From positions 620,001-684,000 of the forward strand of contig JBLDXI010000034.1 of NCBI GenBank assembly GCA_047495785.1: DNA of 64,000 nt, in the 5' to 3' direction. The notes below the pieces were generated by a model, which saw nothing but the letters and a program-made list of their open reading frames with translations, was not told the DNA's origin and ran no database searches. This stretch comes from Lepidodermella squamata. Lineage: Eukaryota > Animalia > Gastrotricha. How positions within the stretch are numbered: position 1 is the first letter of the stretch; each line of letters starts with the position of its first letter. A program made the translations under genes and the position numbers. This document shows positions 276 to 62,081 of this stretch, one piece after another.

Positions 276-1531
276 ATGATTATTCATACTCTTAGCCTTG
301 TACTCTATGCCGCTATTTCCACCTCCATTACGGCTGGTAAGTCGTGAATTCTTCATTATTTTTTCAAATAACATCGGTAAGACATAATAGAGAGTCAATA
401 CATCCAATCATGTCGGCAGAAGGATGTAAAATTTTATACGGCGATTCGGGAGCAAATGGGAGAGAAAGCGGCTAATAGCGAAACTGATTCAAACGGAAGG
501 AATTGCTTGATGATTGCCGCCGAAAGTGGAAATTGCAAAATTGTAGAAACAATCATGAAATACGCCGAAAACGGAGCGAATTCCATAAGCACTGAAGGCC
601 TAACTGGCCTGATGTATGCTATTACAAACAAACACATCGAGTGCATCAAGTCGATCTTGAACGGCAATGCAGACGTGAATATCAAGGGGAAGAACAAACA
701 AACTGCTCTCCACCTAGCCGCGAAGTCTGATATGGCAGAAGTTGTGAAGTTGCTGGTCGAAAAACGCGCGAAACCGAAAGCGAACCGGGGGACGCTGAGG
801 AAATCGACGATAGGGGAATGACCCCATTGTTGATAGCTGCAGAGGCTGGTTCCAGAAAATCAGCGATTCTGTTGATTCAGAAGAAAGCTAACGTCAATGC
901 GGCTAGTTCAAAACTGAAAGGCCAAACACCGCTTCATTTCGCGGCTGCAAAGGGAGATCGAGAGATGATGAGCGTCTTGCTTAATAACGGCGCCAATATC
1001 GAATCTGGGACGAATGAGACTCCGTTAATCCGAGCCATTGAAGAGAAGCAAACTGAAGCGGCGATTTTCCTATTGAATCGAGGTGCCAATGTCAACGCAA
1101 AGCAAATCTCGCCACTTCGATCAGCGATTCACGTTGCAGTAGCAACCGATAATACTCAACTCGTTGAAAAGTTAATCCGGCTGAAAGCTGATTTGAATGC
1201 TAAAGATGCATCGCACTGGCCGCCTGTGATTCTAGCGGCAAAGTCATCAATGTGTGGACCTCTTGAGGCGATAGCTCGTATGACGTATACTACAATGAAC
1301 TTTGAGACATACTTTCGGTTTGGGGAGACCGCTTTGATCATCTCAGCGGAGAAGGGTCTCTTGAAATGCGTCAAAGCTTTGAAAAAGGAGGATCATAAAT
1401 TGGCAAGGATTTCTGATAGCGAGACGCCGCTTCATTTAGCTGCGAAAAACGGCCACGTGGACGTTGTTCGAACTTTGCTGGCTGACGGCTCGAATCCTGC
1501 TCAGTTGAATAGGAACTTTAGCATGATGTAG
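276..1531 (+). pseudogene. Secreted ankyrin-repeat protein, copy A (frameshifted and truncated)
   Basis: ATG 276; exon 1 MIIHTLSLVLYAAISTSITA; intron 337-390 (GTAAG..TAG) joins in frame to ESQYIQSC. An extra ~20 nt near 775-795 shifts the frame (ORFs 456-821 and 818-1531). Homology to the paralogues stops at ~1517. Confidence 0.85.
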
Positions 1532-1867
1532 TTTTATTATTATAGGCCCTCCGCCTTTCGACGCTATAGGCACATGAGTTAGAAAGATTACAGAAATAAC
1601 TTGCCCCCATGCTAATCAGGGCTCTAGTCGAACACGCATGTATCTCGATCATAGGAGTTTTTTATAGTTGTTATTGTTTATATATATATATATATTTTTT
1701 TTTTCTTGCCGGTTTTTTATATTGGTTTGAATAGAAAAGTAGAAAATTGTTGATTCGTTGGTCGACCTTCGCGGCTTTGACGGGCAAGTTGAAAGGCTCA
1801 TTTCAGGGCTATAGTGGCTAGGGCTCAGGGCGGATTTTCTGAAAAGATCGAAGGCAGGGGTTAACTC
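1518..1867. other. Non-homologous insert between ankyrin copies A and B, with (TA)n/T-run
   Basis: No similarity to the ankyrin paralogues; TA/T tract at ~1678-1704; origin not identified. Confidence 0.5.
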
Positions 1868-3127
1868 ATTGGTGTTCTCCTCAATAACGGCGCTAATATC
1901 GAATCTGGGACGAATGAGACTCCGTTAATCCGAGCCATTGAAGAGAAGCAAACTGAAGCGGCGATTTTCCTATTGAATCGAGGTGCCAATGTCAACGCAA
2001 AGCAAATCTCGCCACTTCGATCAGCGATTCACGTTGCAGTAGCAACCGATAATACTCAAATTGTTGAGAATTTGATCCGGCTGAAAGCTGATTTGTACGC
2101 TAGAGATGAATTGTATCGGACGCCGTTGATTTTAGCTGCAAATCTATCGTTGTGCGGACCTCTGGAAGCTATAGCTCGTATGTCGCCTAGAACGTTGAAC
2201 GTGAGGAGATTTAGGTCATCGGGGGACACTGCTTTGATGATTGCGGCGAAAAATGGCCAACTGAAATGCGTCCAAGCTTTGAAGGATGCAGATCATAACT
2301 TGGCTAAGAATTCTGATGGAGAGACAGCTCTTCATTTCGCTGCTAAAAAGGGCTACGTGGACGTTGTTCGAGCTTTGCTGGCTGACGGCTCGGATCCTGG
2401 TAAATTAAAAAAGAATTCGACAACTGCGCTTTTCGAGGCTCTTCTCGCCTGTCACGAGAAGACTGCCGATGTATTGGTCGATAGCATGAAAACTGACCCG
2501 CATCTCACAAAATTCGAACGTTACTCAGGAATTACTCTGCTTCACCTCGCTGCGAAATGTGATTTCCCGATTATTGCGAAAAAGCTGATTGCGAAAGGAG
2601 CGAAGCTCGAGGGTTTGGAAGCAACTAACGATATGACACCTCTCATTTACGCTTGTTCCCTCTTATCAAGGAAAACAGCTCTCGCTTTGATTGACGCTGG
2701 AGCAGATGTGAATGCCGCTACCCGTACCTATAGAAAAAACGCGCTTTACTACGCAGCTCGAAGTGGCGACTTATTCTTGGTCGAATTGCTGCTAGCAAAG
2801 GGTGCAAATGCGGAATCTGAAGGCTACGAGTCGCCCCTTCAAATCGCTTGTATGTACAATACTGATTTGAGAATTATTCGGTATTTACTCGATAGAGGGG
2901 CGAAAGCTAACGCGAGGGCCTACTTCAAACCTAACGGTCCAACATGTCTGCACATTCTTTTGGAATTCGGCAAAGCTAACGATACTGTAAAATTGGAAAT
3001 TACGAAAGTGCTCGTGGCTCATGGCGCTGATGTAAATCTTAAAAATCCGGGTGGTAAAACCGTATTAGCCTTTGCAAAAGACCCAGCTATTCGGGAATAT
3101 TTGATATCAATAGGTGCGAAAGAATGA
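1868..3127 (+). pseudogene. Ankyrin-repeat protein, copy B (5'-truncated)
   Basis: Starts mid-gene; 1868-2453 nearly identical to 5854-6439; ends PAIREYLISIGAKE like the other copies; has no signal exon of its own. Confidence 0.85.
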
Positions 3128-3264
3128 CGCGTTTATTACTACTAACAAATGCATGCGAAAACAAGAGTCAATAAAGCCAAAGTATGAGAGAATCCAGCAA
3201 TTTGCCATGTGCCATTAATCCTTTGCATTAGCTAATGAGTCAGCAATGAGCGAATGCAGCCCAA

Positions 3265-3520
3265 TTGATTTCATACCAGTACCTTCGGAGCCCGAAATTC
3301 GATCGAAGCTTGGTTGAGGCACAGATCGATAATCTTTTCATAAGGCTGATAACAGGGACCTTGCCACAAGCCCATAATGATGATGCTATGCGGCTTGAAT
3401 CGAGCATGGGCAGGTTGACGATCGACGCCGTTAGCGGTCGCCTCACATCGGCGCAGCAATACTTTGCAAAGGCCCAAGGCTGGAATAAGCTTCGCACTAC
3501 TGGAATAGTACTTGAAGATT
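3265..3520 (+). mobile_element. Possible fragment of a Mutator/SWIM-type transposase C-terminal region
   Basis: Short ORF (IDNLFIRL...MRLESSMGRLT) loosely resembling the post-catalytic region of MULE-SWIM transposases; cut by the element at 3521. Confidence 0.3.
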
Positions 3521-4947
3521 CAGGGTATTCGGTTTAAACTCAAACCAATCAGTTTACTAATCAGTTTACACCGGTGCCGGTATAAACCGGTTCTTTTTAA
3601 GTTCAATAAAAACCGCAGTTTTAAGTAAACAGACAAATCCGACGATTAGATAGCAAGACATTACAATGAATATAAGTCGTCCTAGCTGAAAGTGTTGGCA
3701 CAAAATTCAGCGACAAGATCAGGAGTTGCATTAGTTATGATAATCAGCTTTGATTCTTAGCGTGAAGGATCATTTGCCAAGTAAGATGTTGACAAATTCG
3801 AACAAAAATCAATCATTCACAGTGTAATCGATAATCGATAACAGATAACCCGTTTTCAGAATTTTCATAGCTATCACAGATCTGGAGATTAGCCTTTTTT
3901 AATTTTTATTGCTATAAACAAACAACTGGGTACTGCGAAGAAATGGACTTAGTGTTGCGGAATGGACGATGGCTTTGAAAATGTCGACTAACACGGCTCC
4001 AGTTAGAGGTGTACCGGGTGTCAGCCAGGACGGACGCCAGTGCCGCCGATGCGGCGCTGAGATTGAATCCCTAGCACACGTTCTGGGGGCCTGCCCCTTT
4101 AACTCGCTGCTGATAACGTCGAGGCACAACAAAATCCGCCAGAAGATTGCTTTGGAACTACGACGCCAAGGATACAACGTCACTGAAGAGGGACACTGTA
4201 TAGCCGAAAACGGATCCTCTCGGCGTTTTGATATTTTGGCATTTCGAAGAGGAAGCAGACATGGAGCAATCATCGACCCCACAATTAGATTTGAATCATC
4301 AGAAGGTCAATTCGGAGATGTCGACATTGAGAAGCGTTCGAGCTACGAGCCGTGTAGCAAGTTCATCTGCGAAGCCTTTGATTTGGACTCGATAGAAGTA
4401 CACGGCCTTTATATCGGCACACGGGGCTCGCTAACCAAAGAAGAGATCCAATTACTTCAAGATTACGGAATCAGCAGCAGTACAGCTGTTGATATGGCCC
4501 ATCAAATCCTTAAGGATAGCATTAGGATCCTGAATAATCATCTTTACTCAAATAGCCAACCTACTCAAAGACGCTAACTAATCAATCAATCAAGCAATTA
4601 ATTCATCAATTAATCTCATCAAATTATAAACTTAATAATTTATAATCCTGTGTCTCAAAGGCAATGTTATAGTTTGTATATAACACAGTATACCAATAAA
4701 AGGTTTTCTCTCATTTAATCGAATTTGCATGAAAATAGTCGCGTAACACTATACAGTTTTTTTGCGTAGATTAACGTGGTGCACTCCAAAATTCATTGGA
4801 AGCTAAGGTATTTGAGTTGTTCGACTCTCCTTTGGTCATAACCTTTGATTATTGAAATCCATTAAAAACCGGTGTTTATTACCGGTATAAATCGGTTTAA
4901 ACTTAGGCGGTTTTTTCAGAATAAAAACCGGTCGGTTTAATACCCTG
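3521..4947. mobile_element. hAT-like non-autonomous element carrying a nested LINE fragment
   Basis: Termini CAGGGTATT...AATACCCTG; subterminal AAACCGG repeats; flanks TGAAGATT/TAAAAATT (6/8, degenerate 8-bp TSD). A related end lies at ~48392-48460. Confidence 0.65.
3900..4705 (+). mobile_element. 3' fragment of an RLE-type (R2/R4/NeSL-like) non-LTR retrotransposon
   Basis: ORF 3969-4577: CRRC..HVLGAC zinc knuckle, RHN, RFDIL, IIDPTIRFE, EKRSSY restriction-like endonuclease motifs; AATAAA near 4695. Confidence 0.85.
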
Positions 4948-5184
4948 TAAAAATTGCATTGTCCGTACTTTTCGATTCTTGAGAGTTCCATGAGAGAGCC
5001 GCGAAATCAATCAAAATATTCTTAAACCTTGGCTCAACTCGCAAACAATTATTGGGAAGTTTTGCGTGTTATACGCTGGAATCATTAGCATTCCAAGCAT
5101 GAAAACTTAAAAAGAGATTTGTCTGGGATGGAGAATGCAGTTTGTTACTCGGGTAATCCAGACAAGAGATTCCATAGTCTAGCA

Positions 5185-7116
5185 ATGATTATTCCTACCC
5201 GTAGCCTAACACTCTTCGCCGCTCTATTCTCATCTATTGCTGGTGGTAAGTTTAATCTTCCAATATTCTTTTTAGAAACCTCAGTCACGCATAATAGAGA
5301 GTCAATACCTCCAATCTTGTCGGCAGAAGGATGTCACCTTTTATACGGCGATTCGAGAAAAAATGGGCGAGCAAGCCGCTAATAGCGAAACTGATTCAAA
5401 TGGCCAGAATTGCTTGATGATAGCTGCTGAAAGTGGAAATTGCAAAATTGTAGAAACAATCATGAAATACGCCAAAAACGGAGCAAATTCCCGGAGCAGG
5501 GAAGGCCTAACTGCCCTGATGTATGCTATCACAAACAAACACATCCAGTGCATCAAGTCGATCTTGAACAGCAATGCAGATGTTAACATCAAGGGGAAGA
5601 ATAAGCAAACTGCCCTTCACCTAGCTGCTAAATTGGACATGGTAGAAGTTGTAAAGTTGCTCGTGGAAAAAGGCGCGAAACTCGAAGTAATCGATAATAG
5701 AAGGATGACCCCATTGTTGCTAGCTGCAGAGGCTGGTTCCAGAAAATCAGCGATTCTCTTGATCCAGAAGAAAGCTAACGTCAATGCGCTAGCTCAAAGC
5801 CCAGAGGCGAAACACCGCTCCATTTCGCGGCTGCTAAGGGCGATCGAGAGCTGATTGGTGTTCTCCTCAATAACGGCGCTAATATCGAATCTGGGACGAA
5901 TGAGACTCCGTTAATCCGAGCCATTGAAGAGAAGCAAACTGAAGCGGCGATTTTCCTATTGAATCGAGGTGCCAATGTCAACGCAAAGCAAATCTCGCCA
6001 CTTCGATCAGCGATTCACGTTGCAGTAGCAACCGATAATACTCAAATTGTAGAGAATTTGATCCGGCTGAAAGCTGATTTGTACGCTAGAGATGAATTGT
6101 ATCGGACGCCGTTGATTTTAGCTGCAAATCTATCGTTGTGCGGACCTCTGGAAGCTATAGCTCGTATGTCGCCTAGAACGTTGAACGTGAGGAGATTTAG
6201 GTCATCGGGGGACACTGCTTTGATGATTGCGGCGAAAAATGGCCAACTGAAATGCGTCCAAGCTTTGAAGGATGCAGATCATAACTTGGCTAAGAATTCT
6301 GATGGAGAGACAGCTCTTCATTTCGCTGCTAAAAAGGGCTACGTGGACGTTGTTCGAGCTTTGCTGGCTGACGGCTCGGATCCTGGTAAATTAAAAAAGA
6401 ATTCGACAAGTGCGCTTTTCGAGGCTCTTCTCGCCTGTCAAGAGAAGACAGCCGATGTATTGGTGGACAGCATGAAAGAGGATCCTCACCTGAACAAGTT
6501 TGAAAATTGCTCAGGACTTACACTGCTTCACCTCGCCGCGAAATGTGATTTCCCGAATATTGCGATAAAGCTGATTGCAAAAGGCGCGAAGCTTGAAGTT
6601 GTGAAAGCAATTACTGCTATAACACCTCTCGTTTACGCTTGTTCCCACTCATCAAAGAAAACAGCTCTCGTCTTGATTGACGCTGGGGCAGATGTGAATG
6701 CTGCCTCCCGTTCAATCCTCAAAATCAGCTGTATCTTACATGCAGCTCGAAGTGGTGACTTGCCATTGGTCGAATTACTAATAGCTAAGGGTGCGAATGT
6801 GGAACCTGGATGCCACGAATCACCCCTTCAAGTTGCTTGCAAGTACAATAAGGATGCGAAAGTTATTCGGTATTTACTTGATAGAGGGGCAAAGGCTAAC
6901 GCTAGGGTCGATTCCAAATCCAACGGTTCAACATGTCTGCATATTCTTTCGCAATCAGGCAAAGCTAACGATACTGTAAAATTGGAGGTTACGAAAGAAC
7001 TCGTGGCTCACGGCGCTGATGTGAATTTGAAAAATCCGAAAGGTAAAACCGTATTAGCCCTGGCGAAAAACCCAGCTATTCGCGAATACTTGATATCAAT
7101 AGGTGCGAAGGAATGA
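5185..7116 (+). pseudogene. Secreted ankyrin-repeat protein, copy C (single 1-nt frameshift)
   Basis: ATG 5185 MIIPTRSLTLFAALFSSIAG; intron 5246-5297; 1-nt deletion at ~5788 (gcgct vs gcggct in copy D). Otherwise full length, so this could be an assembly error. Confidence 0.85.
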
Positions 7117-8813
7117 TGCATTTCTTTATTGCTAACAAATTTGTGCGATAACAAGAGTCAATAAAGCAAAAGTATGAGAGAATCCATTCCCGTTACAGCC
7201 ACGAGCATACCTAACCGGAATTACCAGGACAAGAAATTTTCTTAATGAATGCTCTGAAAATCAAAATAAAATAATGCATCTGCTTGATTATCTCTAACAC
7301 GGTAATATCTGAAATCTGAAAGCTTCTGATACTGATTTTCAGATTCTCCGCACTCGATGTAGTAAACGAATGATCTTTTCGAGAGAACAACTACATCCTG
7401 TTGGTCTTCTTCCCCCGTCTTAGGACAGGGCGAACTAGGTGATCATCCTAACTTGCCATGCAAGCTCGTCAAATGACTTTGGGCAGTTGTGTTTTCTCAA
7501 AAAGATCTAAATCGAGTACGGAGACTTTGAAAATCAATATTAGAAGCTTCCAGATGTCATGGTTAGAGATCGAGAGAGTTCACCAAGATGATCCAAGATC
7601 TCCCCTAAGGAGGTACTAAGGCGCCGGAGGAGCAAAAAGTCGATTTTTCTGACCTATTGTTTTTTCAACGGTTTCTAGGTAATTCGACAACGCTGAGTCC
7701 AGCGCAATTTACAGAATCGTTCTAGACTTCAAAGTTGTTCATCTACAACATGGGGAACGCTAGGACGACGCCGCGGCGCGCTCGTTGCCCAACGAACGAA
7801 CAAAATCCCATTGCTAATGTAAACAAAATATTTTTAAATTCTAAAATCTTCATTATTTTAATTTTTAAATCTGTTTTCAAATACAAATTCAAATACAGGA
7901 AAATGCGAAATTCGAATTTCTCGTCGTTCACTTTTCTAGGGTGGTCTGCAAAAAAGCTGGTTTTCATCAGTGGAAAAGCTGTTATTAGCTGCTGTAATTG
8001 GCAATTAGGCATGTTATCCAACTTTTCAGACTACAAAAAGCTGCAATCATGCAATGTAAACTTCTATATAAGGCAAGATACCTGGCTCTACGGACCTAGA
8101 CAAGATGAGTTTCCGGACTGGACACTGCATATCTTGCCTAAGATGTTATTTTGTAGGTCGCCTAGTCAGCTGGAGTTCGCGGGGGTCGCCTGATGCTTTT
8201 CGTAAAGCTTGATTATTGTGAAAATTTAGTTAACTGAGTTTGTCAGATAAGAGATAAGGGTGGAATCGCCGCTAAAGACATGGTTCCTTCGAATTTTTCA
8301 GAAGACTGTTTGTCTGTTACCAGTAACAGGTCTGTTACCTGTTATGACTGTTATGACTGTTTCTGGCCGGACATTTCCATCTATTTACCAAATATTGTCT
8401 AAAAATTGTAACAGACACGTCTAACGGCTCTCTGCACACTCGCATCTAATTTCCCAAGTTCTCAACAATGGGATAAATGTTCATTGAATAAAAAAAATTA
8501 ATTAATTTATTAATAGTTCGTTGCAATGCCGCACAAAATCGGGCTTCAAGCGGCCTGAAAAATGAAGATTGAGAAGCACTGTTGTTGACGGCTCCATGTT
8601 ACATGTCCTGCATCCGGAACATTAATAAATAACTGTGGCAATTTGTTCTCCGATCGACTAAAGGTCTTGAATTCCCCACAAATAAATAATTTGAAGCTTT
8701 GAGTAAGTTGGAATCATTAGCATTCCAAGCATGAAACCTTCGACAAATCTGTCCGGGATAAAAAAAACGAATACTTTGGTAATCCAGACAAGTGCTTCCG
8801 TAGAAGTCTAGCA

Positions 8814-10731
8814 ATGATTATTCCGACCCTCAGCATAACACTTTTCGCCACTCTTTTCACCTCAATTGCGGCTGGTAAGTCATAGAAACTTGTTAGTGAT
8901 GCTGTTGAGTGAAATCAAAATAGAGAGTCAATACATCCAATCATGTCAGCGGAAGGATGTCAAATTTTATACGGCAATTCGGGAGCAAATGGGCGAGAAA
9001 GCGGCAAATAGCGAAACTGACTCAAGCGGAAGAAACTGCTTGATGATAGCTGCCGAAAGTGGGAATTGCAAAATTGTGGCGACAATCATGAAATACGTCG
9101 AAAATGGAGCAAACTCGCTCAGCCATGAGGGTCTAACTGCTTTGATGTATGCTATCACAAACAAACACATCGACTGCATCAAGTCGATCTTGAACGGCAA
9201 TGCAGACGTGAATATCGAGGGGAAAAATCAGCTAACTGCCCTACACCTAGCCGCTAAATCGGATATGGTAGAAGTTGTAAAGCTGCTGGTCGAGAAGGGC
9301 GCGAAACTCAATGAAATCGATAATAGAGGGATGACCCCATTATTGGTAGCTGCAGAAGCTGGTTCAAGAAAATCAGCGATTCTCTTGATCCAAAAGAAGG
9401 CCTACGTCAATGCGGCTAGTTCGAAACTCGGAGGCCAAACTCCTCTTCATTTCGCGGCTGCTAATGGCGATCGAGAGCTGATGAGCATCCTGCTTAATAA
9501 CGGCGCGAATATCGAATCTGGACTTGATGAGACCCCGCTGCTACGAGCTATTAAAGAGAAGCAGACTGAAGCGGCGATTTTCCTGTTAAATCGGGGTGCC
9601 AATGTCAACGCGCAGCAAAAAGTCTGGCCACGTCAATCAGCACTTCACATCGCAGTTGCTACGAATAATACTCAACTCGTTGAGAATTTGATCCGACTGA
9701 AAGCTGATTTGTATGCTAGAGATGAACTGCAACGGCCGCCTTTGATTTTAGCTGCGTATCTGTCGTCGTGCGGACCTCTTGAAGCTATAGCTCGTATGGC
9801 TCCCCAAATCTTGAATTTAAAGACATATAGGAGCTTTGGGGACACTGCTTTAATGATCTCAGCGGAAAATGGCCTACTGAAATGCGTCCAAGCTTTGAAA
9901 CAGGCGGATCATAACTTGGCTAGTTCTGATGGAATGACAGCCCTTCATTTAGCTGCGAAAAAGGGCCACGTGGACGTTGTTCGAACTTTGCTGGCTGACG
10001 GCTCGAACCCTGCTCAGTTGAATAAAAACTCGACAAGTGCGCTTTTCGAGGCTCTTCTCAACTGTCAAGAGAAGACTGCGGATTTATTGGTCGACAGCAT
10101 GAAAGAGGATCCTCACCTGAACAAGTTTGAAAATTGCTCAGGACTTACACTGCTTCACCTCGCTGCAAAATGCGATTTCCCGATTATTGCGAAAAAGCTG
10201 ATTGCGAAAGGCGCGAATCTTGAGAGTTTGGAAAAGACCGATTCTATGACACCTCTCGTTTATGCGTGTTCCCGCTCATCACACAAAACTGCTCTAGCTT
10301 TGATTGACGCCGGGGCAAACGTGAATGCCGCTACCCGTACATTCCGCGAAACTAGTCTTTACTACGCAGCTCGAAGTGGCGATTTATCTTTGGTTGAATT
10401 ACTGTTGGCGAAGGGTGCCAATGCGGAATCTGAAGACGGATATGGATCACCCCTTCAAATCGCCTGTACGTACAATAAGGATGCGAAAGTTATTCGGTAT
10501 TTACTCGCTAGAGGGGCAAAGGCTAACGCAAGACCCAACGGTTCAACATGTCTCCATTTAGTTCTGGGAAGACGTAAAGCCAATAATACTGTCAAATTTG
10601 AAATTACGAAAGAACTCGTGGCTCACGGCGCTGATGTAAATATGAATAATCCGAAAGGTAAAACTGCCTTAGCCCTAGCGAAAGACCCAGCTATTCGCGA
10701 ATATTTGATATCAATAGGTGCGAAGGAATGA
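8814..10731 (+). CDS. Secreted ankyrin-repeat protein, copy D (intact, ~622 aa, ~17 repeats)
   Basis: Exon 1 8814-8874 (MIIPTLSITLFATLFTSIAA), intron 8875-8923, exon 2 8924-10731 open; repeated TPLHxAA-type motifs; AATAAA at 10786. Confidence 0.92.
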
Positions 10732-10754: not shown

Positions 10755-12059
10755 CTAACAAATGCATGCGATTATAACAAGAGTCAATAAAGCAAAAGTG
10801 CGAGAATATCCATTCCCAATACAGCCACTTGCATACCTCACAGTTGTCGAGCTGAATTGAGTCACCAATTGATAGGCAGTAACATTGCCAGTCCTACTAT
10901 CAGCAATAATCAACTTCCTATCCCAGTAAATCATAAAAGAGAGGGTAATATCCAAGTCAGTAGCATTGAGGACTGAAATCAGTCCAGCAGTTTGTTTGTT
11001 ATAGGCAATAAAGCCTCCCTTAACCATGGTGAAAACGTAGTCCTTCGTGACAATCGGTGCGTTATTTGTCTCGACTCCTTTGCCGAAATCGAGGAATTTC
11101 GTCGATCGACCAGTTGTTTTGTCAAATGCACAAATTTTGCTGACCAGGCCACATTTTGAGTAAACAGCCTCATCCGCAACAGCCGAGGGTGTTTCCCTAG
11201 GGTTATTATTGTTGTAAGACGCGATTTGGGTGGTCCAATTCATCTTTTGAGCGTCGATATCCACCCCGAACCAGGCTACATTGTCCAAACTAGGCCAAAC
11301 CACTCCGACTAGCAGATTTTGGTACAAAGATGGTAGCCACATGGTGCTTGAGGCTGATGTTGGAAAGTCGATTTTCCATAGCGTTTGGCCTAGTTTCATG
11401 TCCAGCTCCGAGATAGACCCGCTTTGAGCCACGAAGAGTCTCAAATCGTTCAAAATTGATTGGCCTAGGATGTTAGACCCCAAATCGACTGTGAACAGCG
11501 TCTCCCCAGAATCAGGCCGAACAGCCCGTAATTTCGGCCCGGCTTTGAAGTAGACCGTATCGTAAGACTCGCTAACTACATCGCCATATTGGCCATTGAA
11601 GTCATTGTCAGTAATCGGGAGGTCTTGATGGATTTGGGTCCAGCGGATAGTTAGCGAGTCCAAATTCACTGCATGGAAATTTATCGAGCCTCCAGTTCGG
11701 AAACTTCTGGTGAAAAGTAATTCCCGCTTCACACCAATGAAAGGCTGGCTGCATTGCCGGGTTGTATCACCTACAACAGTCAAACTCGTCCGTTTCTCCC
11801 CAGTTTTCGAGTTGATAACAGTTAGAGAGGTGCATTTTCGAGATAGGACGTAGATTGAATCTCGGTGGACAACAGGTTCCCAAAAGTGATTGTCCTTACT
11901 TATCGATGTAAGTATCTGGGTGGTCCATATGGGATCGATCCGAGTTATGTTTCCAACTTCTGTTTCAATATATCGGTTATGGGCATTGCTACCACCAAAA
12001 TTAGGCCAAGATACCGCGAAGGCCACGAGCAAGGTAAGTAAAACAGCGAAAATCAGCAT
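10755..12059 (-). CDS. Secreted/GPI-type PQQ (BamB-like) beta-propeller repeat protein
   Basis: 434-aa intronless ORF; N-terminal signal peptide; WPNFGGSNAHN start motif; blade-end motifs (KTGEKR, TIRW, SGETLF, GQTLW, QKMNW, TTGRS); hydrophobic C-terminal tail. Confidence 0.8.
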   Translation of the reverse strand: MLIFAVLLTLLVAFAVSWPNFGGSNAHNRYIETEVGNITRIDPIWTTQILTSISKDNHFWEPVVHRDSIYVLSRKCTSLTVINSKTGEKRTSLTVVGDTTRQCSQPFIGVKRELLFTRSFRTGGSINFHAVNLDSLTIRWTQIHQDLPITDNDFNGQYGDVVSESYDTVYFKAGPKLRAVRPDSGETLFTVDLGSNILGQSILNDLRLFVAQSGSISELDMKLGQTLWKIDFPTSASSTMWLPSLYQNLLVGVVWPSLDNVAWFGVDIDAQKMNWTTQIASYNNNNPRETPSAVADEAVYSKCGLVSKICAFDKTTGRSTKFLDFGKGVETNNAPIVTKDYVFTMVKGGFIAYNKQTAGLISVLNATDLDITLSFMIYWDRKLIIADSRTGNVTAYQLVTQFSSTTVRYASGCIGNGYSRTFALLTLVIIACIC

Positions 12060-16067: not shown

Positions 16068-17196
16068 ATGGACGACATAAGCTCGAAATATGAGCATGAA
16101 AAATTCAACGAGGCCTGTGTAACAGACGACGTAGCTTACTTTTCGGCTAATGTCGACGCGGCGATATCACTTTTTGGAGCCGATGCTATCGCTGGAATAC
16201 TGAGTGCTGCCGCAAGTCCCAAGTGCCTCAGACATCTATTATCAGTTGCAAGCGTTAACGTGAACGCGAAAGTTTCAAATTTTGTAGAATGGCGGAAGAA
16301 ATTTATCAAAAAATCGGAACAAAGGTGCTTAGCAGCTGCATGCAATCTTTCGATCACACGTCTTGATTTCGGGTCTGTTTCATGTTTCATTTTGGATGTA
16401 CAGAGGATGGAGAGATCATCTGATTGTGAATGATGAAAATCGAGTCGAAACTGTTAAAATTTTATTGGATCACGGCGCTCAAATCAACTTCATCGATATA
16501 TGGAACCGAACAGCTCTAGGATTAAGCGTTGCTTTTGGTCCTTTTTTGAGACCTTTGGTTGAACTTCTCCTCAGCCGTGGTGCAGATGTAGATTCTAAGT
16601 TTTTTCATTCATCTGCCTTGATCACAGCGAGGCATAATGAATATTTGGAAGCCGCTATACTGCTTATCCAAGCCGGGGTGCACTTCGAAGAGATTCCAAC
16701 AGAGTTTAGCCACTGCTATTGTTTTTTGTATTTTAACTCTGATACGGCTTTTATCGGAGGATGTGAAATCGTCATTTTTCCCCGCGGTTCAAAAGCCGAA
16801 TTTTTCAAAGCTGTGACCAAGGCTGGATTTCGTTGCAGGGTGTGTGCTAAGAATATCTACAAAGTCGTGGCAAGATGGGCATGCGATCAAATGGAAAACC
16901 CGTCGCAAATCGATCATCAGCTGTTCGACATGCTACTGTTCTCTCGCATGACATCCTCGTTTGTTCCGAACCAATGCAAAACGCGGCGAGAATACGATGC
17001 AAATAAACTAAGTGCCCTAAACGCAATTTTGCTGCCATATTCCTGGCAGCTTTTCCCAATGAAGCTACAAGCAATGTGTAGAATGGCTATCCTCAACCGA
17101 CTACCGACTGGTTACAAAAAACGGGCCGATGCTATAAATAATGGACTAGGCAACGTTTTACCGCCTTTACTGCTTAGCTATTTGAAATTTGAGTAA
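16068..17196 (+). CDS. Ankyrin + SOCS-box (ASB-like) protein, copy 1 (frameshift or tiny intron)
   Basis: ORFs 16068-16433 and 16363-17196; ankyrin repeats; PMKLQAMCRMAI..LPPLLLSYL SOCS box. Removing a 31-nt GT-AG segment 16373-16403 would restore the frame; otherwise a pseudogene. Confidence 0.75.
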
Positions 17197-28111: not shown

Positions 28112-31100
28112 TTGAACTGTCTGATGAATGTTACAAGCACCTCTCTAGATTTTGACTTGACTGTTAAACTGATATCTTTTGTTGCCTGGAATATCTTTAA
28201 ATTTAGGTTAGAATCATATCCGGATATTATTTATTTGCTTAAGAAATATCTAGTCGTCGCCCTATTGGAAACGTGGCATGATGCCAAATTGGTGCCTCCG
28301 CTTTTACGTAAAGATTTTTATGTAATTCATTCCCCAGCTAAAAAACTTGCCGCATCGAGAGGTAGAAGTTTGTCTGGAGGTATAATTATATATATTCACA
28401 GTTCTTTAAAATCAATTTTGACCTTGCTTTTCAAATCAAGCTACTTGGTTGTCCTCAAACTTGAACTAAAGGATTCAATTATGATAATTGCCTTTTGCTA
28501 CATATTACCTGAAAAATCTGAAAAAATCGAAAAAGAGCGGCGAAAATCTCACACTAATCCTAACTCTAAACCTAAAAAAGCTCAAGGTCGTTTTAAAAAA
28601 TTATGGTCCGAGGCAATAAACAAAATCACAGAAATTCAATCTCAAATTCGCATTGAAAACCTCGCTAACCCCAAAAAAATTGAAATTATTATGATGGGCG
28701 ATTTGAACATACGAACGGGCAACATTAATAAATCTTTTGAACCACTAGACCGAAATATTAATTTTTTTCACAATCAAATACCGCCCAGAAAATCGAGAGA
28801 TATGGAACTATCAAAATCGAGTACCTCCAATCGTAACTTCTTTTTCGAAAAACTAGATGAAATGGGTCTCTATATTGTCAACGGTACGACAACCTCGGAT
28901 GAATTTGGCGAATTTACGCATAAAAAATTGGGGGACAATCATAAACAAGCTTTCACTGTAGTCGACTACGCGCTTGCCTCCGAGACCCTGTTCGAAAAAA
29001 TTCATGATTTCGAAGTAATTTTAGGTGAGGGGATCTCTGATCACTACGCGATCTGTCTGACTTTGAACACCGAGCTTAACATTGGGAATAGCGAGGAGGA
29101 TATCTCTGGTCATCAGGTTGATTTTCGGGTTAACAAGAGTTATTTCGCATCGCTGTGGGAAAGGTTCGAGGTCGATGAGCGCGAACGCAACGATACCCTG
29201 AATTCGCTAATCCTTAAGCTATATAAAACGGGTAAAAAAGCTCTATACTTCAAAAAACGGAGGCAAGAAAACTCAGAGCATGTATCGTTTTTTGACGGCG
29301 AATGCCAAATCAAACGTGAAATAGTTAGAAAATCTAGGAAACTAGCTACTAGACATCCTTCAAACTCGCTATATAAAGCTGAGATGGATAAACACGAAGT
29401 AGAATACAAGCAGTTACTCCGCTTGAAAAAAGAACAGCTTGAGGACAGCCTGAAGGCGGAAGCCGTAGACTTTGCCGACTTACTCGAAACACACCCGTCT
29501 GATTTTTTCAAACTTGCCAAAGAACTCGACCGTCTGAAGAGCATAGAAACCAACGTTGATTTGCCTGATGCCACAGAAATAATTAGTTTTTTCAGCCGGC
29601 TGTTCACAGCCTCAACAACGGGACCTGTCAGCCCCGCGTCGCCAGCAGTTGTAGCACGGGTTACGAACGACCCACATGACCTAGCTCTCGTAAAACCAGT
29701 ATCAATAGAAGAAATAGAGTTTATTATATCCAAATCTAATTCTAGTTCCTGCGCCGGAATAGACCAAATTGACTACGAATGTCTGAAATTAGACGGCTGT
29801 AAACGGGGTTTATATCCCTTCCTAGCAGTTCTATATACTAAGATCCTTGAAACGGGCGAATACCCAGAATGCTGGCGTAAAGCATTGCTGATCCCTATTT
29901 ATAAGAAAAACAGCCGATTAGATCCTAAAAATTATAGACCTATCTCACTTCTGTCAGTATTTTCCAAAATATTTTCAAGTATCCTAGAGAAACGCTTGCG
30001 AGAATGGTGCACGGCTAAAAAGATTTTGCGACCCGAACAGTTCGGATTCACGCCAAAAATAGGCACAGTAGATGCGTGTACTCTATTCTACGCCATCGTG
30101 GCTTATTACCTTACTAGGAAAAAGAAAATATACACAGCCTTCGTAGATTTTTCAAATGCGTTCGACAAAATTAGCCGTGCTCTCTTAATGAAGAAGCTCA
30201 GAAAAATAGGACTGCCTTTGTCCTTTATTGAGGTCATTAGGAACATGTATGCCGACAATACATTGCTGCTTAGAATGAAATCGACTATTCTATTCGATAA
30301 GCCAATAAAGTCAAACGTGGGAGTCCGACAGGGTGACCCATTATCACCACTTTTGTTTTCAATTTTTATAAACGATCTCATTCCTTTCCTAATGAAAGTT
30401 TTCCCTGGCTTGACCTTCGGTGAATATGTAGTCTTGGCAATCCTATACGCCGATGACTTGGTCCTACTGGCAGAAAGCGCTGAGCAGCTGCAGAGCCTCC
30501 TGGATGAGCTAGTAGCTTATGCTGAAGAAAATTCATTAATAATTAACGTCGATAAAACAAAAATCTTGATTTTTGAAAAGAAATTTGTTGAGAATAATCA
30601 ACTAAAATTTTATCTAAACGGCGAACAACTCGAAAGAGTTAAAGAATTTAAATACCTAGGAGTTTATTTTACTAATAATTTGAATTTTGATAAAATGGTG
30701 GAGGTTGTCAATGCGAATGCGAAACGAATTGCCGCTTTTATACCCAACATGATCGATCGGTTCACCACATATCTACCACCCAAAACGTTTCACCTTCTCT
30801 ATAATTCCTATCTGGTTAGCAACTATTCCTATGCTGGAGGATTTTGGGGTCAATCAAAAAAGGCCACAATTTTTCCTTTCAATACTCATTTCGTAAAACA
30901 GCTCTGCCGAATTCCCGCCGCGGCGAGAGACGAGCTCGTGAAACGTGAATTCTACCTAGACCCTCCAAGCCTAATCCTCACTAAAGCAGCTATACGTCAC
31001 TTTCTTAAACTCAAATTCGAGGACAACCATATACTGCTGAAGACAGCTTTCGAAATAATTGACTCAAACAAAAATCTATATAAACATATCTTCAAAAATT

Positions 31101-31740
31101 TACCAGAAGATGTTGAAAAACTGGGCGGAAAAGAAATTTTCAATGCTACATCTAAATTTGAGGGCCTAGCCCTGCTTGAGAGATGGTATGAGAAATGGGT
31201 CGAAAATGACAAATGGTCGACGGCCTCTTCTCTAAAATCGCTCTATCAAAATCCTGTTTACTCTGAAGAAAAATTTGACAAACTACTAATGTACTCGAGT
31301 ACGCGGCAAGCTTTCTGGTCACTTAAAAATATCCAAACGCTAGCTATGATTAGAACTAATTCCATGCATAAACCGTTTTGCTATATAAATAACTTCGGCC
31401 TTAGATGTATTTTCTGCTATAAAAATAGTAACAATCCCGTCCTATCTCTAAATAGCTTCGCTGACTCAGTAGAACTTTAAACTCACCTATACCTAGAATG
31501 CAACTACTTGCCGTATCTACATAATATAAATAACGCTGAAATGAAACCTGATAAAACTGACATAATTAATTCTATAATTTGCTGTGAATCTAGCGGCTCT
31601 GCACATTTATCGAAATTACTATCCCTCGCCTACAATTACCGGATGACTCTAAAATTGCATACATATCCGCCTATTCCATCTACCTAATCTTGACCAACTA
31701 TATCGGCAATATTAATAAAAAATGTGAATAAATACTCTGA
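28112..31740 (+). mobile_element. APE-RT non-LTR retrotransposon ORF2 (clade uncertain)
   Basis: ETW, MGDLN, VDY, SDH endonuclease motifs; NYRPISLL, GVRQGDPLSP, YADD RT motifs; TAA at 31478-31480 interrupts the CIFC..HLYLEC knuckle and the frame continues to 31687. Flanked by MULE-type tacgaaa repeats (28014-28060, 31880-31950). Confidence 0.93.
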
Positions 31741-56229: not shown

Positions 56230-57274
56230 ATGGACGAAATAAGGTCGAGATATGATCATGACAAGTTCGCCGAAGCCTGTATAACAGACGACGTAGCTTA
56301 CTTTTCGGCTAATGTCGACGCAGCGATTTCAGTGCTTGGAGCCGGTGGTATCGCTGGAATACTAAGCGCGGCAGCAACCCAGTCGTAAAAAAATAGATCC
56401 TAGCTAGACCCAAACCGCTAATATTGGATCTATCTGGATAGATCGTGTGGGATGCGAAAAATGACACTGGGGTAGATCTAGCTAGCGACTACCTAGACGG
56501 CGGATAGGTCCTGATGGATAGACCGGTGGTAGATCTAAATTTTCGCGATTAGATCGTGCGTAGATCTAGTTCATAATACGGGCTTGAACTGCCCGCATGA
56601 ATCACGGCTTGAATCACGGTTAGAAACTTCTCCTCAGCCGTGGTGCAGATGTGGATTCCGCTTTTCATGATTCATCTGCCGTCATTAAAGCGAAAAGAAA
56701 CAAAGATTGGGAAACTGCTATACTGCTTATCCAAGCGGGGGCGCATTTCAAAGAAATTCCAACGGAGTTTGACCACAGCGATTGCTTGTTGAATTTTCAC
56801 TCAGAACGAGCTTTTGTCGGAGAATGTCAAATCGACATGTTCCCCCGAAGTTTAAATGCCGAATTTTTCAAAGCTCTGGTCAGGGCTGGCTTTAGCTGCA
56901 GGCATTGCGCGCAGAATGATTTTTTTACAAGCAAAGTTGTGGCAAGATGGGCTTACGATCAAATGAAAAGTCCGTCGCAAATCGATCATCAGCTTTTCGA
57001 TATGCTCCTGTTCTTACGAAGGACATCCTCATTTGTCCCTAACCAGTGCACACCTCATTATATTTTTGATATTGACAAGTATAAACATCATGTGCTACAT
57101 CAAATTTTGCTGCCATATTCCTGGCAGCTTTTCCCAATGAAGCTACAAGCCATGTGTAGAATGGCGATCCTCAACCGACTACCGACTGGTTACAAAAAGC
57201 GGGCTAATGCTATAGATAATGGACTAGGCAACGTTTTACCGCCATTACTGCTTAGCTATTTGAAATTTGAGTGA
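56230..57274 (+). pseudogene. ASB-like copy 2, ankyrin core replaced by an insertion
   Basis: MDEIRSRYDHDK..LSAAA to ~56377; foreign tagatc-rich sequence ~56378-56622; homology resumes at ~56623; SOCS box intact. Confidence 0.85.
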
Positions 57275-58135: not shown

Positions 58136-59772
58136 ATGGCTGAAATTATTAGCTCGAAATTTGAGCATGCTAAGTTCGCCAAAGCCTGTTTAGCAGACGA
58201 CGTAGCTTACCTCTTGGCCAATGTCGACACGGCGATTTCAGTGCTTGGAGCTGATGGTATTGCTGGAATACTGAGCGCTGCAGCAAGTCCCAAGTGCCTC
58301 AGACATCTTTTATCGGTGTCAAAGGTTAACCCGAACGCGAAGGTTCCTAGTTACGTAGAACACAGAAATTCCCAAATTTCGGAGCAAACCTTGTTAATAG
58401 CAGCCTGCAATCCTCTGGTCTTACGGCTCAAACTCTCGCCTGATATGCCAACTATTATGAGTGACTTTTTCCTTCGTATTGAAAATCGAGTCGAAACTGT
58501 CAAAATTCTGCTGGATCACGGCGCTGAAATCAACGTCATTGATAAATGCAATCGGACGGCTTTAGGATGCAGTGTTGATAGGCGGCTCAAACCTTTGGTT
58601 GAACTACTACTTAGCCGCGGGGCCGCTTTCGATTCTCCGTGCCAGGATTCATCACCCTTGATGGTGGCTTTTCAAAATAAAGACTGGGAAAGTGCTATAC
58701 TGCTAATCCAAGCCGGGGCACATTTCGAAGAAGAAATTGACTCTAGCACCCATTGCTTCACAAACTGCTTAGTGAATCTCAACCCTGATTTCGCTGTTAT
58801 CGAGGATATGGAAACCGCCATTTTTCCCCGATTGGCTGATTTTTTCAAGGTAGTGGCCAAGGCTGGTTATTGTTGCAGGCGTTGCGCGCAGAATGATTAC
58901 TTGACAAGCATAATCGTGGCAAGATGGGCTTACGATCAAATGAGCAACCCGTCGAAAATCGATCATCAGCTATTCGACATGCTCCTGTACTCACGAATGG
59001 CATCATCATTTGTTCCGAATCAATGCAAACCTCGTTATAAATATGATGCGAATCAACTAAGTGCCCTAAACGCAATTTTGCTGCCATATTCCTGGCAGCT
59101 TTTCCCGATAAAGCTACAAGCTATGTGTAGAATGGCGATATTATACTTCGGTTTTGCAGGATCAAAGTGCGCGTGCCCACGTGACATGAAAAAATAGCTA
59201 GCTTTTGAGGCGGTGATGGTTTCTTCGTTGCTTCGTCATTTCGTCATTTCGTCACTCCGTCATTCAACAAAAAAACTTGGGAAAAAGTGAGAATCGAACC
59301 CAAGACCATCAGGGTTGGCAGCCCTGAGGTGATACCACTATGCAATAGAGCTCAGTGACAAAAGATGTGCAGATTTGGCATTTTTGAACATTACGTCAAT
59401 ACTATACATAAACGAGTTCAAACTATCTTACATAAGACGACCGCTATTGCGTAGTGGTATCACCTCAGGGCTGCCAACCCAAAGGTCTTGGGTTCGATTC
59501 TCACTTTTTCCCAAGTTTTTTTTTAAGGTTAATAGTTTTTTTGTTGAATGACGGAGTGACGAACTGACGAAATGACGAAGCAACATCACCGCCTCAAAAG
59601 CTAGCTATTTTTTCATGTCACGTGGGCACGCGCACTTTGATCCTGCAAAACCGAAGTATAATGCATCCTCAACCGACTACCGATTGGTTACAAAACACGG
59701 GCTGATGCTATAAATAATGGACTAGGCAACGCTTTACCGCCTTTACTGCTTAGCTATTTGAAATTTGAGTGA
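58136..59772 (+). pseudogene. ASB-like copy 3, SOCS box split by a MITE
   Basis: ORF open to CRMAI (~59139); the remainder ILNRLPIGY..LPPLLLSYLKFE* lies at 59665-59772. Confidence 0.88.
59140..59662. mobile_element. Palindromic MITE with two inverted tRNA-like units
   Basis: ~78-bp perfect terminal arms (attatacttcggttttgcagg...); inner arms 59287-59348 (-) and 59444-59504 (+) have an A box, a GCC anticodon loop, a B box and a T5 run. Confidence 0.88.
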
Positions 59773-59780
59773 ATGCTTCT

Positions 59781-62081
59781 TCAAGTACAGTGAAAAGAGC
59801 TTGCTACAAAAGCATCTTGGAACTTATCCAATCGAAGTTTTACATAGGGTCTTTCGCTGTAAGGGATCATTCTTGATTCCTTGCCATCGTAATCAGCCGG
59901 TGTATCGTTGCAAAAACTGAGATCTCCCTCCGAGATGGTCTGGCCATTCCTATCAGCATATTGCTTCTTCCTCTCGCGAATCACCTCGCAATTGAACTGA
60001 TGCTCCCCATCGCCAATTTGATGTTTCCAGTAGAAGATAACGCTATCGATCCAGGGTTTGAAGAATTTCATGCTAATTAAGAGTGGCACTGCTGTTAAGT
60101 TGTTAGACCGGTGCGTTGCGGAGAGTATCATTATGCCGTATTGGCGGTAGCGTAGTGACGTTGAGCCAGGGTCTGGGCAGAAAAGTGGCCCGCCAGAATC
60201 GCCATCCATCATAGCTGTTCCAACTTTTTGCAGTTTTGTATCTTTCTCTTCAGGGGTAAGCTTACCCTTAAGAATACTCGCCCTTTTCGGTACGTAAGTG
60301 AATAGGCAAAACGATTCGTTGCCCAGATAGTAACGCATGAATTCATTACAGTCATCTTGAAAGATTTTCTGGAATCTTGCGACTCGGGGTGCATTTGGTG
60401 TTGCGTGTTGTGGTTCATCCCCAGTTACGTTCTTCCTTTCTACAGCACCATTTGGCTTTGTTACAGTTACAGTTTTTCGAACAGACACGTATTTACGAGT
60501 AAGACCCCAGCCTGAAAACTGAATGAAGTTTGATTCGAGTAGGAATAAATAGTTAAAGGAACTCAAACTTTGGATTCCGAGCTGGGATATGGGATTAGGG
60601 TTAGGAATTGGAATGAAGATCAGATAGGGAATTCTTACCTATTTCGAAAGGAACTTAAACTTCGGAATTCGATCTGTGGGGTCTAATTAGGGCCAGATCT
60701 TTTATTAGGCAGTTGAGGCAGTTTTGCCTTGGAGTCCGATGAAATTTTGAAAAATCTGGTGAAAAACCACAGGGTTACCAACGAGCAGAGTGCGAAGTAG
60801 GATCGTGGATCGTGGAGCTGAGGTGTTTTCTAGCACCCAACAAAAGTAACCAACACTAACAAAAGGTCCCCATTTGTTTTTTCAGCCTTTCTCTGGTTGG
60901 GATTCGCAATTTGCCCTTGATCAATGTAATTTTCAAATTTCAAATGATTCTGAAATCTGAAAGTTGTGATTTCGATTCTGAAGATATGCTTTCAGAGATT
61001 CAGACATAGACTTTACTGTGGAGATACTGTGGAGATAGAGAGAGCATTACCTATTGCGAAACATATTTTCAAAGGATCTTCTGCTTCTACTGCTTTCATT
61101 CTATCCAAATCCGTGGCATAGTCTGCAAGTGGAGGAATGTAGGGAGAAAAAGTGTCCCTCGGATCGACTTGACAGAGAATGCGACGCTTCCTGTATCGCG
61201 GATCCGTTGTGTAGTGCTTGACCGTGCTCTTTTTCAGGTTCAGATGCAATATCGCTATATCATCGTTTTGGAAACGTGATCCTTGTCGAAAGTCACAAAA
61301 TAACGAAGATTGAAACAAATGTCCGAATGAAGTCTCACCTCGTTTCATGACATAATTCCTGTGATAGGCGTAGTGATCAACAGGAATGTCGACGTATTTG
61401 TAGTTTTTGTACGTTATCGGACGACTGCCAAGTCTCACCATCACGTAATAAGTGTCCTCGCAGCGTTGTGGTCTGTAGGTATCCCCCGCCCATATCCTGA
61501 TGTTGTTTTTGATTTTGAAAGTTGCATCAGTCTTGATAAAAGAACAAACATAGTTGTGTTGTCGGTCTTATTTCTAAGACAATGAGCAGCTGTTAGTACG
61601 AACTCAGGATGTATCAGAGTCCCGGTGCAACGCCGGTTGTAGCTTCTGAAAAAAGCTTCAAAACATATTCGAGAATCAAGAATTCGAAAAATCAAACCCA
61701 TATTCATTTGTGATCTCCCCACGCCGCTTTTCCCTGAAAAAGTACATTTCATTGATCGCGGTTCTTTCAATCAATAGAAATCCTAATGCTGACCTGATCA
61801 GTATCATAGCTAGCCAAGGCGCTGAGGTAACAGGTGAAACGGCTACCCCATTCGCGATTCGTTTCGCAACATTCTTCGGATCGCTATTATCAAACGTCGG
61901 ATCAAAATGAGGCTCCGAACAATTTTTTGCTGGAAAAATGTATCGACAAATTGAAATAAAATGTGTACAAAATCAAAAACTTGCTTTTATCCAAGATCTC
62001 AGCAATTGTTACAGAGCCAGGTATTAAACCTTGAATTCGCGAAGTCAAAACAAAGACCAAGGTAAAAGTTAACAGGAACAT
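59781..62081 (-). CDS. Secreted S1-family serine protease 1 (multi-exon)
   Basis: Signal MFLLTFTLVFVLTS; activation KR-IANG; VLTAAHC, DDIAILHL, GDSGGP; C-terminal extension. Internal exon borders not all resolved. Confidence 0.85.

Follow-up and report, generated by a model that had tools for sequence, protein, structure and literature searches.

The window analyzed here is a stretch of 64,000 nucleotides of a Lepidodermella squamata contig. It contains three tandem loci, all on the plus strand, each consisting of a mini-exon, a short intron, and a long ankyrin exon. In all three copies, exon 1 is 61 nt long from the ATG, encodes 20 hydrophobic residues, and ends in phase 1. The introns are 54, 52, and 49 nt in copies 1, 2, and 3, respectively, all in phase 1 with GTAAGT..AG boundaries, so that the coordinates and phase proposed in the initial annotation (tandem loci with a 61-nt first exon and a 49–54 nt phase-1 intron) were matched. 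Comparison between copies showed 72–80% identity with zero indels for exon 1, 46–69% identity with indels for the intron, and 82–92% identity for exon 2, starting at its first base. The conservation profile is that of an exon, an intron, and an exon, and the frame read unspliced runs into a stop after 23 residues. A conserved 27-nt motif is located ~105 nt before the ATG; it is exact at 5078–5104 (copy 2) and 8710–8736 (copy 3), two exact matches compared with zero expected, and a diverged version is found near 172–198. AATAAA signals at 3170–3175, 7160–7165, and 10786–10791 each lie inside a conserved 3′ block. The host animal genome is of the small-intron type. An intronless HSP70 gene in it scored 77–78% identity equally with bivalves, arthropods, and a tardigrade, and COX1 is missing from the assembly.

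Among the three copies, only copy 3 (8814–10731, plus strand) is intact; the annotated number of three copies thus holds for loci, but as a working gene only copy 3 is left. Its exon 1 (8814–8874) encodes the predicted signal peptide MIIPTLSITLFATLFTSIAA and supplies the first nucleotide of a codon for Glu. After the intron (8875–8923), the ankyrin exon (8924–10731) contains 601 full codons and ends with ...SIGAKE and a stop. Pfam analysis assigned copy 3 to the ankyrin-repeat proteins (Ank clan; PF00023 and PF12796) above the gathering cut-offs, with 267 bits for Ank_2 (cut-off 27.3) and 256 bits for Ank, and matched Ank families only. The AF2 model (pLDDT 90.9) showed a three-helix N-cap followed by 17 ankyrin repeats, seen as 17 helix pairs at a spacing of 31–39 residues. 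With a maximum 19-residue hydropathy of 1.23, the mature part has no membrane span. The repeat number of about 17 and the lack of a transmembrane or other domain, as initially described, were therefore borne out for copy 3. An anchor or retention signal was looked for at the C-terminus, which is neither hydrophobic nor KDEL-like. An identity as an ASB protein (ankyrin plus SOCS box) was rejected, since Pfam gave no SOCS-box match in copy 3 and the protein ends within the last repeat. ASB proteins do occur elsewhere in the window. Five N-glycosylation sequons were present in the 601 residues, which is not enriched compared with a roughly estimated chance level and weighs against export.

The other two copies are disabled, and they were handled piecewise, each piece in its own frame. 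Copy 1 consists of three parts, a 5′ fragment (1a), a dispersed repeat, and a 5′-truncated fragment (1b), all but the unoriented repeat on the plus strand. Fragment 1a begins with exon 1 at 276–336, which carries the ATG, 20 hydrophobic residues (MIIHTLSLVLYAAISTSITA, lacking any charged residue), and one further nucleotide. It continues through the intron at 337–390 into an ankyrin exon fragment at 391–1531, which corresponds to residues 1–367 of copy 3. The reading frame of 1a is broken by a 20-nt insertion at 775–794, and a stop is found at 1529–1531. The repeat inserted at 1520–1866 is young; full-length copies with 98–99% identity are present on contigs C84, C2, and C74, along with ~40 partial matches. 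Fragment 1b (1869–3127, residues 187–601), whose frame is shut upstream by a TAA at 1862–1864, shows 100% identity with copy 2 over ~2080–2380 and 71–86% identity thereafter.

Copy 2, also on the plus strand, comprises exon 1 at 5185–5245, with the leader MIIPTRSLTLFAALFSSIAG containing one Arg, the intron at 5246–5297, and the ankyrin exon at 5298–7116. A single-nucleotide deletion after 5787 leads to a stop at 5852–5854, and the remainder is open to 7116 in the shifted frame. The depth without the extra G was ~77/143 in read set X1 and ~18/24 in X2; because the deletion is present in two read sets, it is regarded as real. With disabling lesions in two of three copies and mobile-element sequence between and inside copies, the whole cluster might be decaying, and copy 3 might be an unexpressed relic that is still open by chance. 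We consider this highly improbable: copy 3 still has a 1.8-kb open frame with dN/dS of 0.08–0.28 against the other copies at dS ~0.5, its splice sites are preserved, as are the upstream motif and AATAAA, and its coding and 3′UTR bins are covered by contigs from a possible RNA run. The locus is a clear example of gene turnover through frameshift, mobile-element insertion, and gene conversion.

Regarding origin, the best database matches were only 25–31% identical and were a mixture of bacterial and animal ankyrin proteins, and an Atlas look-alike search for the cluster returned generic ankyrin clusters only. The initial annotation had considered a microbial source compatible with the gene structure. 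Given the mixed matches, the spliceosomal introns conserved in paralogues, and the AATAAA signals, this finds no support, and neither does a horizontally acquired bacterial ankyrin gene, since no specific bacterial similarity was found and the phase-1 intron is conserved.

Next, we analyzed the leader. Approximately six to eight loci genome-wide make up the close subfamily. Five diverged paralogues on contigs C73, C54, and C10, 31–47% identical where aligned, each carry their own unrelated leader with a hydrophobic core and usually a Lys or Arg near the start, for example MSSRLLLVLLLPLIGFTY and MRVLFAAVTCLAVICSAAK. The phase-1 intron is found at the same point in four of the five. The leader and ankyrin array lie in one uninterrupted frame in the family locus L009, itself one of the five paralogues, and likewise in L037, a further ankyrin gene on contig C32; therefore, no splicing assumption is needed for these two genes. 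Signal peptides were called by a hydropathy heuristic alone (a core of ~7–15 residues, no acidic residue, and small residues at −3/−1). By this heuristic, all eight leaders (three in the cluster and five in the paralogues) were signal-peptide-like: their highest 9-residue hydropathy was 2.0–3.3, Asp and Glu were absent, and the hydrophobic cores of ~12–15 residues were followed by small residues, with A-A-G, T-Y-G, or A-K-G at the exon-1 ends. Only this upstream hydrophobic mini-ORF sets the family loci apart from generic ankyrin loci, and a search with the N-terminal module returned no relative, but one unrelated leaderless ankyrin protein. An automated scan for spliced leader exons was uninformative, as any GT/AG was accepted and the wrong frames gave 10 and 10 hits compared with 11 for the true frame. 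Seven long open frames with sushi domains showed no ankyrin match, as judged by Pfam for one of them and by a motif scan for the other six.

Alternatively, the hydrophobic exon might not be a cleaved signal. The protein could be cytosolic, starting from the internal Met of the MGEK sequence or from an ATG in the copy 3 intron, or the exon could serve as an uncleaved membrane or organelle anchor. Ankyrin proteins are overwhelmingly intracellular, and the cluster leaders lack a positively charged n-region, apart from the one Arg in copy 2. Moreover, no splice joint at the introns was seen in the contigs of three runs; in the sole possible RNA run, the exon 1 bins had zero depth. However, the internal Met is not conserved in the paralogues, while the residues preceding it are: Cys7 is invariant in distant paralogues that lack the internal Met, and dN/dS of 0.08–0.13 over residues 1–162 indicates coding constraint up to the acceptor site, upstream of that Met. 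The in-frame ATG in the copy 3 intron has no equivalent in the other two copies, where stops are found instead. The leader character is also kept over eight loci of unrelated sequence and in two single-frame genes, and the cores, followed by small residues, are short for a membrane anchor. We therefore regard this alternative as distinctly unlikely.

Secretory-pathway entry is likely, because the diverged paralogues keep their own signal-peptide-like leaders together with either the intron position or a single open frame. The hidden signal-peptide exon of the initial annotation thus gained support from comparison. As a signal-peptide mini-exon is predicted to be joined to a 17-repeat ankyrin array, we propose that a normally intracellular fold is probably exported here. 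Our preferred reading, held with moderate confidence, is that the tandem cluster evolves by birth and death and belongs to an ankyrin family specific to the animal lineage, whose signal peptide is encoded by a separate mini-exon and whose solenoid is exported. In keeping with this reading, the contigs of the possible RNA run are confined to coding and 3′UTR bins. In copy 3, exon 1 would be spliced via the 49-nt intron to the single 1.8-kb exon, and the ~20-residue leader would send the nascent chain into the ER. Cleavage would occur near the exon junction, after the small residues A-A-G and before Glu-Ser-Gln. The released product would be a 65-kDa, basic, soluble protein with the N-cap and 17 repeats and no span, anchor, or retention signal; outside the cytosol, its modeled solenoid is expected to serve as a scaffold for binding.

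We then analyzed where the copies differ. Inter-copy differences were enriched on the canonical binding face, that is, the hairpin and helix-1 (odds ratio 4, p=1e-9), in agreement with the clustering noted initially, and the most variable positions between paralogues were those randomised in DARPins (positions 2, 3, 5, 13, 14, and 33). In the peptide triplets given as examples of this clustering, the first peptide of each was taken from different copy-1 fragments. Since the paralogues differ mainly on the hairpin/helix-1 groove, they probably have different binding partners. Selection was tested by pairwise dN/dS on three to four sequences. At the six DARPin positions, dN/dS was 0.20–0.86 compared with 0.13–0.32 elsewhere in six pairwise comparisons, and it never exceeded 1. 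This fits relaxed constraint, which is expected at exposed sites of any ankyrin protein, and gives no sign of diversification. The proposal of a diversifying repertoire therefore lacks support, also considering that two of three copies are dead and that the close subfamily numbers about six to eight loci genome-wide.

Comparison of the copy 3 model with known structures using Foldseek gave AnkB/AnkR as the top match (E 1e-28), and DARPins matched too. Ankyrin repeats are a textbook intracellular binding module. Like the long arrays of the ankyrin-B/R membrane-binding domain, NOMPC, and TRPA1, copy 3 forms a continuous solenoid of 33-residue helix-turn-helix-hairpin repeats; however, those arrays are cytosolic and fused to other domains, whereas copy 3 consists of a leader and repeats alone. 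DARPins use the ankyrin scaffold purely as a binder, as is predicted for copy 3, and vary at the same positions, but they are engineered with 2–3 internal repeats, in contrast to the 17 natural repeats of copy 3, whose variability is compatible with relaxed constraint. Widow-spider latrotoxins are animal proteins with ~20 ankyrin repeats that reach the extracellular space, and their ankyrin part matches copy 3 by fold. At the N-terminus, latrotoxins carry a large pore-forming region, and they lack a classical signal peptide. Copy 3, in contrast, lacks such a region and has a predicted signal peptide. Bacterial ankyrin proteins with Sec signals or delivered by injection (sponge symbionts, Legionella, and Rickettsiales) and secreted ankyrins of oomycetes are reported to leave the producing cell, as is predicted for copy 3; the copy 3 family differs from these in its spliceosomal introns, AATAAA signals, and surrounding animal mobile elements.

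Effectors that act inside the cells of other organisms are known from bacteria, as Ank effectors, and from gall insects, which secrete theirs. A protein of this effector or venom type would be exported from a gland through the leader, and its ankyrin array would act inside cells of a host, prey, or plant. Such a gene would have an anatomy identical to that expected under our preferred reading. The tandem, fast-turnover, mobile-element-rich locus and the latrotoxin arrays among the Foldseek matches are also in line with it, as is the general rule that ankyrin arrays work in the cytosol. However, a translocation motif and a toxin domain are both absent and dN/dS is below 1, and we consider an effector role unlikely.

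Returning to the exported solenoid, a broader and tentative reading, which we regard as possible but doubtful, is that the ankyrin solenoid has been recruited genome-wide to serve as a scaffold for recognition outside the cell; it would be nature's equivalent of DARPins and can be likened to lamprey LRRs. The cluster would then be one birth-and-death locus of disulfide-stapled repeats with paralogue-specific grooves. In the literature, we found no described animal family of signal-peptide-bearing, repeat-only ankyrin arrays. Should export be confirmed, the ankyrin fold would work naturally in an oxidising extracellular milieu, and the conserved cysteines would make the family a natural system for testing scaffold stability. 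The locus could then hint at a system for recognition, adhesion, or effector functions that has so far gone unrecognised in an animal lineage with sparse sampling. Among paralogues of 31–46% identity, eight cysteines are invariant, and these may form inter-repeat disulfides. Against this, four of the eight fall in the core of helix 2, at positions 17 and 19, and a leaderless ankyrin protein, P0067, also commonly has Cys at position 19.

The genome holding the window spans 121 Mb in 151 contigs, the window being C34:620001-684000. Three ankyrin loci were found in 276-10731, all on the same strand. A three-way DNA alignment upheld the anatomy proposed by the initial annotation, namely a leader exon, a phase-1 intron and an ankyrin exon, at the proposed coordinates. 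In copies 1, 2 and 3, respectively, the ATG-bearing exon, exactly 61 nt long (276-336, 5185-5245 and 8814-8874; +), is followed by a GTAAGT...AG intron of 54, 52 and 49 nt (337-390, 5246-5297 and 8875-8923; +), and the ankyrin part of each locus is a long exon directly 3' of this intron, that of copy 1 having since been broken. The junction lies in phase 1, where G plus AG gives Glu, followed by Ser-Gln-Tyr-Ile-Gln-Ser-Cys. Among the copies, exon 1 is 72-80% identical with zero indels, the intron 46-69% identical with 2-13 gap columns, and exon 2 82-92% identical starting at its very first bases. Translation from the ATG without splicing reaches a stop after 23 residues in copies 1 and 3. Furthermore, copies 2 and 3 share without mismatch a 27-nt motif about 105 nt 5' of the ATG (0 expected by chance), and AATAAA occurs within a conserved block about 55 nt 3' of each stop codon in the three copies.

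Searching the genome with copy 3 identified five more family loci, on C73 (two), C54 and C10 (two), which are 31-47% identical where aligned. Each carries directly upstream a leader of its own sequence, mutually unrelated (MSSRLLLVLLLPLIGFTY; MMKLALLLLLPILTK; MRVLFAAVTCLAVICSAAK; MKLHIYTFIFMISFSLAKS; MRSALCLILYLLLNATAS) but common in character, with a hydrophobic core, zero acidic residues, small residues at the end and usually a Lys or Arg near the start. A short phase-1 intron separates leader and ankyrin exon at the same position in four of the five; in one of them, L007 (C73:355540-357249, -), the leader exon joins in frame solely through a 52-nt intron whose donor appears to be GC (AAG|GCATGT...ACAG), a candidate GC-AG intron. 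In the fifth, L009, leader and ankyrin array lie within a single unbroken frame, so no splicing assumption is needed there; the same holds for one more ankyrin gene with a leader, on C32, in which leader and repeats share a frame. Leader-bearing ankyrin genes are thus present on C34, C73, C54, C10 and C32. The initial annotation had named translation from an internal Met (MGEK) as a case that would overturn its model. Residues 1-162, including the 22 residues before the MGEK Met, are under strong constraint (dN/dS 0.08-0.13), and Cys7 is invariant in paralogues without this Met; a start at MGEK is therefore unlikely. An in-frame ATG occurs within the intron of copy 3 alone, copies 1 and 2 having stops there. 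The hidden signal-peptide exon, as a prediction, is well supported by this comparison and probably correct, and export of the ankyrin protein is predicted as likely, with somewhat less assurance.

Expression evidence came from contigs of three sequencing runs, one of which (X2, 2015) is flagged 'RNA?'. X2 contigs lie on nearly all coding bins in copies 2 and 3 and on the 3'UTR bin of copy 3, and two of them match 6175-6240 and 6316-6382 exactly. Bins 7234-7427 and 8010-8785 (unique intergenic sequence), 8786-8979 (copy 3 exon 1, intron and first bases of exon 2) and 5100-5293 (which holds copy 2 exon 1) had no X2 contig. Although depth is low, this distribution suggests that copy 2- or 1b-type sequence, at least, is transcribed. 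No splice joint at the leader introns was seen in the run contigs, X2 being of low depth and only flagged 'RNA?'.

The claim of three copies was real but overstated: three loci share the anatomy, of which one is intact and two are decayed. Copy 3 (8814-10731) is the only copy free of lesions. In copy 2 a single G is missing after 5787, giving a stop at 5852-5854, and the remainder is open in the shifted frame. The G is absent in ~77 of 143 depth units in the contigs of run X1 and ~18 of 24 in those of X2; contigs carrying it are what the paralogues would contribute. Because the deletion occurs in two data sets (2024 and 2015), it is no assembly slip. Copy 1 comprises fragment 1a (276-1531, +; copy 3 residues 1-367), with a 20-nt insertion at 775-794, and fragment 1b (1869-3127, +; residues 187-601), whose frame is closed by an upstream TAA at 1862-1864. 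The peptide triplets first used to compare the copies therefore set 1a or 1b beside copies 2 and 3. Pieces of the broken copies were analysed individually and left unrepaired, and each exon was used as a separate query. Inside copy 1 lies a 347-nt dispersed repeat (1520-1866) with full-length copies 98-99% identical on C84, C2 and C74; the first 105 nt of this young element match ~20 further loci at 75-78%, possibly as the conserved head of a SINE-like family. Identity to copy 2 is 96-100% in copy 1 tracts 980-1106 and ~1869-2420 (100% over ~2080-2380) and 71-90% in the remaining sequence; gene conversion or non-allelic recombination has therefore taken place recently. Between copies 1 and 2, a 202-residue ORF (3969-4577, +) with a Cys-x2-Cys...His-x4-Cys motif, then an acidic nuclease-like stretch, had zero Pfam matches; we take it to resemble the C-terminal endonuclease region of R2-type non-LTR retrotransposons. 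The stretch from copy 2 to copy 3 holds a high-copy repeat at 7428-8200, where X1 depth is ~1100-2600 (compared to ~65 on unique sequence) and variant contigs are numerous.

All Pfam matches of copy 3 exon 2 (601 full codons) were to ankyrin families (Ank_2, 267 bits; Ank, 256 bits), and the AlphaFold2 model of its product, built from a six-row family alignment, had a mean pLDDT of 90.9, with three N-terminal cap helices and then 17 helix pairs spaced 31-39 residues. Foldseek returned ankyrin-B and ankyrin-R, with their 24-repeat arrays, first, then DARPins, NOMPC, TRPA1 and latrotoxins. The mature part (calculated pI 8.9, 64.7 kDa) has no membrane-span-like segment, the peak 19-residue hydropathy being 1.23, and the C-terminus (...IGAKE) falls inside the last repeat. 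The 17 repeats were registered on the Thr/Ser of the TPLH motif, in agreement with the model helices. Copies differed at 54 of 101 sites in the six positions randomised in DARPins, the designed ankyrin binders (33, 2, 3, 5, 13 and 14), compared to 111 of 499 others (odds ratio 4.0, p 1.4e-9), so differences do cluster on the binding face, as first described. The diversifying repertoire read from this clustering was not supported by pairwise dN/dS (Nei-Gojobori; six comparisons, dS ~0.2-0.6), which was 0.20-0.86 at these positions, 0.13-0.32 elsewhere and 0.08-0.42 across the whole gene. Such values are what exposed positions under weak constraint give in any ankyrin protein, raised here by the neutral decay of the dead copies, and are no evidence of positive selection; the three or four sequences compared are too few for a site model. 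Against distant paralogues, identity was 16-33% at the DARPin positions and 34-49% elsewhere; each member therefore presents a different groove.

Eight Cys residues of the exon-2 product are invariant in four full-length members (31-46% identity), in pairs one repeat apart (7/38, 48/84, 282/320 and 380/416). In two of these pairs the geometry is alike, one Cys standing at helix-2 position 17 and the other at position 19 of the next repeat. Hypothetically, this pairing would be compatible with disulfides between repeats of an exported protein. Against this, positions 17 and 19 belong to the core, and many repeats of P0067, a leaderless database ankyrin protein, also carry Cys at position 19.

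A word search of the protein database, evidently without the source genome's own proteins, found 4349 ankyrin proteins, and the best-scoring 120 of these were 24-31% identical. Among those 120 were fish ANKRD52/28, coral and sponge ankyrins, and planctomycete, verrucomicrobial and Wolbachia proteins; this mixture of bacterial and animal matches leaves the suggested microbial origin unsupported. The family-specific N-terminal 100 residues retrieved only P0067, not an orthologue, and a search of the literature turned up no account of an animal family of ankyrin arrays with signal peptides. By its HSP70, the source genome is resolved no further than Metazoa, without a close relative among sampled species, and the assembly contains no COX1. 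The family looks lineage-restricted, a reading limited by the lineage itself being unsampled.

Other genes were also observed. Abutting copy 3, a single-exon gene (10755-12059, -) encodes 434 residues. Its start resembles a signal peptide (MLIFAVLLTLLVAFAVS), it matches a PQQ_2/BamB-type beta-propeller (33.7 bits against a cut-off of 27.6), and its C-terminal tail is hydrophobic and may be a GPI signal or anchor; it is of interest for gene transfer because the beta-propeller family is mostly bacterial. Three paralogous ankyrin-repeat ORFs (16363-17196, 56651-57274 and 58136-59197, +) share a C-terminal tail, ...LQAMCRMAILNRLPTGYKKRA...LPPLLLSYLKFE, which resembles a SOCS box (ASB-type); they would be an intracellular ankyrin family separate from the leader-bearing one. 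Sushi/CCP domains are very abundant genome-wide (150 scored matches above cut-off and 1734 candidates at first look), and many of them form dense tandem arrays on C15, C19, C33, C3, C13 and C24; a short search, covering seven long sushi-bearing open frames, found none with an ankyrin match. A 1122-residue ORF (28112-31480, +) is of a non-LTR retrotransposon type; by eye, its N-terminus is endonuclease-like and reverse-transcriptase motifs are present. Lastly, a paralogous ORF pair (59781-60566 and 62197-62829, -) carries a GDSGGP serine-protease motif and then a common C-terminal extension.
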